Source: Calcarisporiella thermophila CBS 279.70
Lineage: Eukaryota; Fungi; Calcarisporiellomycota
Length of the DNA stretch: 64,000 nt
Reading direction: 5' to 3'
Assembly: GCF_041956535.1 (NCBI RefSeq)
Contig: NW_027192195.1
Coordinates: 715,533 to 779,532, forward strand
Position numbers and translations under genes: made by a program
Notes under the pieces: model-generated
What the model was told of the DNA's origin: nothing
Seen by the model: the letters and a program-made list of their open reading frames with translations, nothing else
Database searches by the model: none
Part shown: one piece after another, positions 45,901-47,687 of the stretch
Layout: every line of letters begins with the position of its first letter
How positions within the stretch are numbered: the first letter of the stretch is position 1

Positions 45901-47687
45901 GCTCAGCAAAATAACGACTGTATCAACAATTCCGATAACATAGTAGGCGTAGTAATAGAAAAGCTTTATAGGAGAATAAAAAAAAAACAAGTTGGTGAAT
46001 CTCTTCCACAGCTTGGGGAGACATCATTGGGACCGATAGCACTTACCCAAAGGACCATAAATTGATAAAGATAGAAGTATCTGAAGAATTCTCTGGCCAA
46101 AGCGCTAAAAAACGAGGGAACGTAAACGGATATGAAATTCTCTCCAACGAGCTCCATGCTAAGGCAATTAGTCCATGTTGGTATAGGAAACGTGAGTCGA
46201 GAGAAAATTTTTCGAGTTACCGAAATTGCGCTTCTTCCGTCGAGAGACCTTCGCTATGCTCCAGTAGCTCGCGATTCGTCGTTCCCAGGTAATATTGGTA
46301 CAGGCCAAACACGTTTTTCTCTGGGTTATATATATATCGTGCACACTGGAACTTGAAGAAGAGGGTGCCACTTTTAGTCTTTTGCAATGGCACAGTTTCA
46401 ACCAGCATTCCTAATCTGTGCTTATACGTGAGAACCATGTTCGGCAGTTACAACCCACCAAGTTCAACTCACCCAAGCGCAAGCTTAAACTTATTTTCAA
46501 ATTTATGCAACCAGTACAGCGCACGTGAACTGTCCTCGACAAGATGCATCGGCTTTTGCTTTTTGGTCACTTCAATAAATTGTGCGTTTGTGGGCATGCA
46601 TTGTAAGCGAAAGAAATTTCGCAATCTCCCCCGACTAACATTAAGTACTATCAACCATAGCGCAGCAATATACCACACAATTATAAAGTTGACTGAGGAG
46701 ATGTAGAAGCTCTCGAAAAAGAGGCCATAAGAGCGCCCGTTGATATTGCCGTAGAAGTCAATCGTAAGAATGGCAAGCCATACAAACCAACCCAACGTGT
46801 ATAGAATGACCAACAGAAGCATGAACCTCCCAAACGCATCATTTCGAAAACCTTTCAGAGTGAGGTGATCCGAAGCCGAGTCCAAGGTCTCAATTGAGTC
46901 GAGACTAACTTCATCGTCACCGTCTCTTAGCTTTTCGTCCTTGTACGAACTGATATGTGAGTTTTGATGGATATTTAAAACGATATTCTGTTGAGAGATG
47001 AATTAATATAAAGAAGCAGAGAGGCAAAAGGCATTGAAGAAATACTTACCCTTTCTCGGGATTTTTTGTATACCGTCCAAAGTGCCATAATCCCGAAAAA
47101 GAATGATAGTAAAATCCACACGCTTAGCCATCGAGGCTCTACCCAAGAAAAGCTCTGTGGTGCGCGCGGTGGGCACTTCAGCCACATTGCATCACTTTGT
47201 GGATCGAACCCCACGGAGATGTTACTGATTCCGAGCGTAGAGGCGCAAGCGTAGGCTATCTGAGTCGAGTCGGAAGCGTTGAAGTCTCTTATCGTCACGC
47301 TCGTGCCTACTCGGCAGGGAAATAGAGAGATGGGCGAGTCGGAATCACATTGGCATGGATTGCGGACTCCACTACAGGAAGTTTTGCAAGTGCCATCCAT
47401 GCAGAAGCTCTGGCCCTCAGGGCAGTTTGCCGAAAGACTCGACGGACAATTCAGGAGATTCGAAACGCAGAGTGGAGGACATTCAGCATTATATTTCGTC
47501 GGAAGTGGGCATTTCGCACCGTTAATGTCCCATCCATTCACTTGAGGGTGGGATAAGTGACCATGCTGAGAAACGCTCGAGAAAATGCCTATAATTGCTC
47601 ACCTTGATTAAATGCAGGAATAGAGTGTCCTACGCTCGCCAACTGTAAGAGCAACGAAATGTACACAAGCGCCTCCGCCCGATGCAT
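42950..47687 (-). CDS. P5B-type P-type ATPase with N-terminal signal peptide and Cys-rich ectodomain
   Basis: ESSLTGE, TLFAGT, TM4 [80 protein letters not shown]. The 5' exons splice in frame via introns 47602-47541 and 47049-46988. Confidence 0.9.

Follow-up and report, generated by a model that had tools for sequence, protein, structure and literature searches.

In the textbook view, P-type ATPases are pumps whose N-termini lie in the cytosol, and such exoplasmic partners as exist, for example the Na,K-ATPase β subunit and Cdc50, are separate proteins. The locus described here, in a 64,000-nucleotide stretch of contig NW_027192195.1 of the fungus Calcarisporiella thermophila CBS 279.70 (the window), raises the question of whether a pump of this superfamily can carry an exoplasmic domain in its own polypeptide chain. 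The original prediction, made from the letters of the sequence, was that a signal peptide and an extracytoplasmic domain with 13 cysteines are spliced to a P5B ATPase, and that the product might represent a distinct P5 subfamily, effectively a receptor fused to a pump. A cysteine-rich N-terminus is indeed joined to a P5 pump at this locus, and the architectural reading is right; as for the functional role of the ectodomain, we infer at present that the gene encodes a pump of a third P5 lineage whose luminal ectodomain acts in cis as a cap resembling a β subunit or Cdc50. This reading is the best explanation of the whole, and its probability is put at roughly 0.5.

The gene and the carriers of its cysteine-rich module

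The coding region opens with an ATG at 47687 on the minus strand, 9 nucleotides downstream of an in-frame TGA, and its features are listed in Table 1. Splice sites were set by GT/AG dinucleotides and frame arithmetic, and the public protein model VTP21DRAFT_9408 (P0223, an 'uncharacterized protein' of 1408 amino acids) was mapped onto the window; it matches 47687-42950 exon by exon, with identical splicing. In homology searches, single exons or database proteins served as queries rather than a self-joined spliced model. Both in the sequence and in the public model, the two 62-nucleotide GT-AG introns, the exons that they separate, the 13 cysteines, the NAS and NIS sequons, and the transmembrane helix are exactly as originally described.

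The three 5' exons form part of a single gene, as is indicated by their in-frame splicing, by the public model, and by continuous frames in paralogues. The 28-Mb genome holds five further copies of the cysteine-rich exon (34-51% identity), and a P5 body lies directly downstream of the exon in each of the five; among all six paralogues, the ectodomains are 33-50% identical. In the paralogue on contig C31, an uninterrupted frame of 478 amino acids takes in the cysteine domain and the transmembrane helix as well as the linker and P5 N-terminal region; on contig C36, an uninterrupted frame of 689 amino acids extends from the cysteine domain as far as the A domain. A short first exon is present in all six paralogues; it ends in xP(A/V/I/L)F(N/T)x plus G/GT (the slash marks the splice site) and is followed by a phase-1 intron. 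Moreover, all 13 cysteines are invariant across the six paralogues and are 92-100% conserved among 123 full-length homologues, nearly all absences being gaps in truncated models; thus, the cysteine pattern is not due to chance.

The same arrangement is found well outside this genome. A profile built from the six paralogous cysteine domains was searched against 1.84 billion representative proteins and yielded 111 matches, of which the complete ones are about 1300-1500 amino acids long; in almost all matches that include the protein start, the domain begins within residues 1 to about 75. The proteins fetched include 151 of 1200 amino acids or more that carry the domain (median start at residue 28), and the one family member of that length without it is an N-truncated model. 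A search with the cysteine-rich segment alone, as had been proposed, finds the domain together with the P5 body. No free-standing complete domain protein was seen among the named hits of this hidden Markov model (about 30 of the 111 were looked up), and the short hits that were checked are fragments or partial models. The named fungal carriers belong to Kickxellomycotina, Zoopagomycotina, Entomophthoromycotina, Mucorales, several chytrid orders, Blastocladiomycota, and Olpidium, and the named protist carriers are the ichthyosporean Amoebidium and Plasmodiophora; there are no Dikarya or animal proteins among the named carriers. The Amoebidium protein (P0059, 1427 amino acids, domain at residues 25-198) derives from a Trinity transcript in EukProt, which provides transcript-level evidence. 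In P0287, an unnamed intermediate, one open reading frame (ORF) of 1375 amino acids fills nearly all of a 4.2-kb metagenomic contig and contains a signal peptide, a cysteine-rich start with the pattern CP...CxPxCV...CP, the P5 body, and the loop cysteines (see below). Judged by these sequences, the fusion is real: one gene codes for the cysteine-rich module and the pump.

Database entries of this kind number in the hundreds and are mostly labelled 'hypothetical'. Such proteins are thus already in databases, and a third P5 clade has been named (see below); the architecture itself is without description in the literature searched, in which no account was found of a signal peptide, cysteine-rich ectodomain, extra helix, or matching luminal loops in P5 pumps.

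Table 1. Features of the P5-type ATPase gene; positions are those of the window (nt, nucleotides; aa, amino acids)
Feature	Position	Strand	Remarks
Whole P5-type ATPase coding region	42950..47687	-	9 exons, 8 GT-AG introns, 1408 aa
Exon 1, signal peptide	47603..47687	-	85 nt; 28-residue signal-peptide-like start; ends in phase 1
Intron 1	47541..47602	-	62 nt, GTGAGC...AG, phase 1
Exon 2	47050..47540	-	163 complete codons: 13 Cys, NAS and NIS sequons, 21-residue hydrophobic helix, then KKSRER
Exon 2, first part: Cys-rich ectodomain	47131..47540	-	mature residues about 23-165; 13 Cys; sequons NAS at 116 and NIS at 135
Exon 2, last part: TM0 (additional transmembrane helix) and positive stop-transfer	47050..47130	-	WLSVWILLSFFFGIMALWTVY, then KKSRER
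Intron 2	46988..47049	-	62 nt, GTAAGT...AG, phase 0; in-frame join to exon 3
Exon 3	46473..46987	-	acidic cytosolic linker, two long hydrophobic helices, start of P5 N-terminal domain
Exon 3 helices	46754-46837 and 46613-46708	-	aa about 243-270 and 286-317
M4 substrate-site motif	45150..45167	-	SPLLPA
Phosphorylation motif	45024..45038	-	DKTGT, Asp755
Family-specific luminal loop L7/8	43441..43518	-	WFRCHEFD...KWWLLGDNYE; conserved Cys1246
Family-specific luminal loop L9/10	43124..43281	-	conserved Cys1326 and Cys1332

Intron lengths within the gene (window 42950-47687) are highly uniform: six of the eight measure 61-62 nucleotides and the other two 57 and 83 nucleotides, all with GT-AG borders. 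Directly upstream of the gene lies a Ca-ATPase gene of the PMCA type (P2B; window 48100-52527), and the paralogue on contig C4 likewise follows a C-terminal exon from a PMCA-like gene (C4:1173500-1173904). As a PMCA gene stands beside a P5 gene at both loci, the two genes appear to have been copied together as one block.

The P5 class of the pump body

P5B ATPases (human ATP13A2, Ypk9 of yeast and Chaetomium) are lysosomal or vacuolar polyamine exporters, and P5A ATPases (Spf1, ATP13A1) are endoplasmic reticulum (ER) dislocases of transmembrane helices. The pump body encoded in the window is a P-type ATPase of type P5, judging by its motifs and by its closest solved relatives, which are P5 pumps: in a sequence comparison with the PDB, it reaches 213 bits with P5B and 158 bits with P5A, and the next best matches, Ca-ATPases, reach 62 bits. 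Pfam searches of the exon ORFs recovered E1-E2_ATPase (1.3e-20) and Hydrolase. The catalytic motifs TGEP (residue 561), DKTGTLT (755), TGDN (989), and GDGGND (1092) are intact in VTP21DRAFT_9408, which suggests that the pump is active. The P5 catalytic motifs, the best PDB sequence match, the best Foldseek E-value (see below), and the retained Asp of M6 are points of likeness to P5B. The dephosphorylation motif of the A domain (residue 561, exon 6, 45402-45963) reads TGEP in all four fungal members checked; Amoebidium, Plasmodiophora, and P0287, the three members compared that are non-fungal or unnamed, have TGES, as do P5A and P5B examples.

P5B pumps have been defined by PPALP in M4 and P5A pumps by PPELPxE (PMC10654040). 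In the present protein, SPLLPA stands in place of PPALP, and the motif of the family, (S/T/H/Q/L)P(L/I/M/V/T)(L/I)P(A/T), also lacks the acidic PP(D/E)LPxE of P5A. The N-terminal domain PF12409 was matched neither by exon 3 (E<=1) nor by six full-length relatives (E<=0.001). Two canonical P5B genes stand beside the six ectodomain genes in the same genome (C4:1308105-1311925 and C13:423045-427210); both have VPPALPA in M4 and a PF12409 domain, detected at 58-65 bits.

A phylogeny of P5 pumps, which had also been proposed, was computed from 51 proteins and 1023 columns (quick IQ-TREE run, LG+C20; some branches are long). The family forms its own clade outside P5B and P5A, comprising 26 rows with three unnamed intermediates and two degenerate members (support by the Shimodaira-Hasegawa-like approximate likelihood ratio test, SH-aLRT, 100; stem 0.78). 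Canonical P5B proteins (from animals, Mortierellomycetes, and the C4 gene of this genome) form a separate clade (SH-aLRT 98), as do P5A proteins (99), and all P5 pumps are separated from the P2 outgroup at 100; the tree does not fix the order of the P5 clades. The proposal of a distinct P5 subfamily is thus upheld by the other M4 motif, the separate clade, and the two canonical P5B genes kept in the genome, whereas the label P5B has to be dropped, since motif, PF12409, and clade membership all speak against it. These sequence comparisons support the pump body as a third P5 lineage, separate from the characterised P5B pumps Ypk9 and ATP13A2.

The N-terminal half of the pump may also differ from that of P5B. 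In an AlphaFold2 model of residues 240-760 (predicted local distance difference test, pLDDT, 87), two helices (H4-31 and H47-78, 28 and about 31 residues, pLDDT above 93) precede a β-rich N-terminal domain, M1-M2, the A domain, and M3-M4. The best Foldseek E-value for this model is that of P5B/ATP13A2 (2.7e-21, 24-27% identity), while CtSpf1, a P5A pump, aligns over 510-518 of the 521 columns of the modelled half (TM-score 0.60-0.65, 19-20% identity); such a near full-length alignment is consistent with N-terminal helices like those of P5A, in which two helices likewise precede the N-terminal domain. In P5B, by comparison, the N-terminal hydrophobic segment dips into the membrane without spanning it (PMC5837089, PMC12655044), in contrast to the two long helices predicted here.

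Only P5A and P5B, with cytosolic N-termini, are recognised in this P5 literature (PMC10654040, PMC5837089, PMC12655044); a third clade, 'P5C-ATPase', was named in 2025 around Toxoplasma TgFLP12 (TGGT1_289070), together with PfATPase3; its members take in PF3D7_0504000 as well as proteins of moss, diatoms, and oomycetes (PMC12217143). No N-terminal targeting sequence was reported for TgFLP12, signal peptide and cysteines are never mentioned, and its 12 predicted transmembrane helices equal the number left in the present protein when TM0 is set aside; a lipid or fatty acid has been reported as the substrate of this P5C pump (PMC12217143). The taxon pattern of P5C, compared by its published description only, is compatible with the carriers seen here, and the family, set beside P5C on that descriptive basis, may be its fungal part. 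The searches made here yielded no apicomplexan, moss, diatom, or oomycete P5C protein.

P0315 and P0318, from ENA metagenome contigs, are Asn/Lys-rich P5-like proteins of about 1500 amino acids with PPSLPLSL in M4 and without signal peptide or ectodomain. They form a long separate branch outside the family clade, though the P5 backbone of the tree is not fixed, and they may be alveolate-type P5 pumps.

Predicted signal peptide, ectodomain, and luminal loops

The signal peptide and the topology were called by heuristic residue statistics, namely n-, h-, and c-regions, small residues at -1 and -3, and a stop-transfer helix with a positive cytosolic side. In exon 1, the h-region LVYISLLLQLA is followed by the c-region V-G-H-S, and the predicted cut lies before IPAFNQ; the hydropathy of the h-region in this copy is moderate (1.45 over 19 residues). 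A hydrophobic h-region is present in 103 of 109 full-length homologues, 79 of which also have an xPx(F/W/L) motif. Of these 79, 73 have A, G, or S at position -1 and 71 have V, A, T, or I at position -3; the pattern is the classical one of signal peptidase. By the same heuristic, the N-terminus has the properties of a secretory signal peptide with a type I membrane anchor. In particular, TM0 has a hydropathy of 2.12 and forms a long helix in the structural model (residues 135-162 of the model), and YK..RE is conserved at TM0 across the paralogues. N-x-S/T sequons occur at 1.15 per 100 amino acids in the ectodomain versus 0.29-0.44 in the cytosolic parts, a roughly threefold enrichment, and 95% of the proteins have at least one in the ectodomain.

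The features of the order originally proposed, from a signal peptide through a luminal or extracellular disulfide-rich domain to a stop-transfer helix, are thus all present in the residue statistics, the sequons, the cysteines, and KKSRER. A luminal exposure of the ectodomain is predicted because the signal-peptide statistics, the sequon enrichment, the near-invariant cysteines, and the positive-inside stop-transfer signal agree; the secretory N-terminus, its cleavage, and the membrane topology are likewise predicted from sequence. The predicted number of spans before M1 is even, and the catalytic domains would therefore stay cytosolic; a total of 13 transmembrane helices is predicted.

The ectodomain together with TM0 was modelled by AlphaFold2 from 62 sequences with a mean pLDDT of 92.6, and the predicted fold resembles nothing in the collections searched. 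Pfam has no family for exon 2 at E<=1; Foldseek gave no usable match in the PDB (best E 1.5); a wide VIA-align search of 48,161 chains returned nothing at Z>=2; the ESM Atlas holds no relative (TM<=0.32); and an Atlas feature search gave no match. Identity of the ectodomain as a CFEM, WSC, or EGF-like domain was rejected, there being no Pfam or fold match. Nor did an already described P5 N-terminal domain come to light, an outcome for which the original prediction had allowed: PF12409 is absent, and Pfam, the PDB, and the ESM Atlas are without a match to the ectodomain.

The luminal side of the pump is altered as well. L9/10 exceeds its P5A and P5B counterparts by about 40 residues, and compared with these two classes, the enlargement of L7/8 and L9/10 and their conserved cysteines are seen only in this clade. 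L7/8 follows the consensus WFRCxEFD...KWWLLGDNYE, with one conserved cysteine, and L9/10 has two. The three loop cysteines are 98-99% conserved, whereas conserved cytosolic cysteine positions retain the residue in 60-98% of sequences, with frequent substitutions; the luminal cysteines add up to 13+3 = 16, an even number. Joint losses of cysteines gave no pointer to disulfide partners, as nearly every absence stems from a truncated model. Signal peptide, ectodomain, TM0, and enlarged loops set the family apart from P5B, and P5A pumps lack the signal peptide and the ectodomain. The N-terminal domain and the luminal surface of the pump may have co-evolved, as the sequences suggest.

The ectodomain does not always accompany an intact pump. 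P0053 (Mycoemilia scoparia, 1800 amino acids) and P0079 (Spiromyces aspiralis, 1303 amino acids), both from Kickxellomycotina, keep DKTGT and the ectodomain (E 4e-43 and 2e-40, respectively) and have lost TGE, TGDN, GDGxND, and xPLLPA in M4; P0079 is also without the three loop cysteines. By their motifs, the two proteins look like pseudo-pumps that retain the ectodomain.

The role of the ectodomain

In Na,K- and H,K-ATPases and in P4 flippases, the β subunit and Cdc50, respectively, place a membrane-anchored, disulfide-bonded, and N-glycosylated exoplasmic domain beside a P-type pump and contact the luminal loops around M7-M10. The likeness to the present family is one of analogy only: no sequence or fold similarity of the ectodomain to these subunits was found (Pfam, PDB, and ESM Atlas), and they are separate polypeptides of other topologies, whereas here the domain is fused to the N-terminus of the pump behind a signal peptide. 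In the proposed mechanism, the cleavable signal peptide would direct the N-terminus into the ER lumen, where about 140 residues would fold as a disulfide-rich, N-glycosylated domain; TM0, with its positive-inside KKSRER, would bring the chain back to the cytosol, and two more N-terminal helices, similar to Ma and Mb (cf. P5A), would lead into a normal M1-M10 pump. The ectodomain would then lie at the luminal face of the pump to which it is fused, resting against L7/8 and L9/10, which are enlarged and bear cysteines; as a cap, it may be needed for folding and ER exit. It may also shape the luminal entrance or vestibule, through which a luminal substrate would be moved towards the cytosol, as in P5B; given SPLLPA in M4, this substrate probably differs from the spermine that canonical P5B pumps move.

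A coupling between the ectodomain and the luminal face of the pump is suggested because the L7/8 and L9/10 insertions and their three conserved cysteines are confined to this clade. A complex prediction of the ectodomain and TM0 with residues 240-760 and 1130-1408 scored 0.01, the supplied alignments being unused, and thus speaks neither for nor against docking. It weighs against the cap that the predicted cleavage of the signal peptide derives from our own residue statistics, and that the retention of the ectodomain in P0053 and P0079, despite their decayed pump motifs, hints at a role other than transport.

The retention in these two relatives also lends some weight to a receptor-like function, the possibility raised in the original prediction, in which the ectodomain would bind an external or luminal ligand and thereby concentrate the substrate or regulate the pump instead of serving as a structural cap. 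The divergence of the ectodomains among the six paralogues could mean diversified specificities, and a fold like nothing known would also be compatible with such a role. However, neither a binding motif nor a known ligand-binding fold was found with Pfam, Foldseek and VIA-align against the PDB, the ESM Atlas, or the feature search; conservation is strongest in the cysteines and scaffold residues; and the luminal loops have changed along with the domain, which a structural partnership fits at least equally well. Ligand binding is accordingly regarded as a possible but doubtful function.

It has also been considered that the N-terminal hydrophobic stretch remains uncleaved, or that the module is mainly a handle for sorting and quality control, with glycan- and disulfide-dependent ER exit and targeting to the vacuole or plasma membrane, outside the transport cycle. 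In this copy, the hydrophobicity of the h-region is no more than moderate, and β and Cdc50 subunits are primarily needed for ER exit. On the other hand, the -3/-1 pattern and the adjoining xP(x)F/W motif are conserved across phyla, as expected of a real cleavage site, and an uncleaved anchor would leave the cysteine domain between two helices and still luminal, so that the architecture would be little changed; this explanation appears unlikely. Finally, an annotation artefact, in which the cysteine-rich exons would form a separate gene for a small secreted or membrane protein and be in frame with the ATPase by appearance only, is rejected as scarcely credible, since it is contradicted by the continuous ORFs of the C31 and C36 paralogues, the single ORF of P0287, the Amoebidium transcript, and the 151 full-length carriers; a look-up of sequencing runs for 45300-47900 returned none.

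The cap reading can be carried further, though such an extension is tentative and would hold only with some luck. The members of the family would then be the first P-type ATPases to carry, fused in cis, an exoplasmic domain that resembles a subunit: a disulfide-knotted cap, led by a signal peptide and locked onto lineage-specific luminal loops, perhaps by an inter-domain disulfide between the odd thirteenth cysteine and Cys1246 of L7/8. Such a cap would gate the entry of a substrate other than a polyamine, perhaps a lipid or fatty acid, and the family would represent the branch of P5C found in opisthokonts and rhizarians, with losses in Dikarya and animals.

To our knowledge, no member of the family has been studied. 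The family has expanded in Mucorales and in further early-diverging fungi, among them pathogens of humans, insects, or plants; it also bears on the question of what the poorly understood P5 pumps that are neither P5A nor P5B transport. As a large and conserved P5 lineage in which the exoplasmic module resides in the same chain, together with remodelled luminal loops and a changed substrate-site motif, it provides a natural setting in which the contribution of exoplasmic caps to P-type pumps can be studied.

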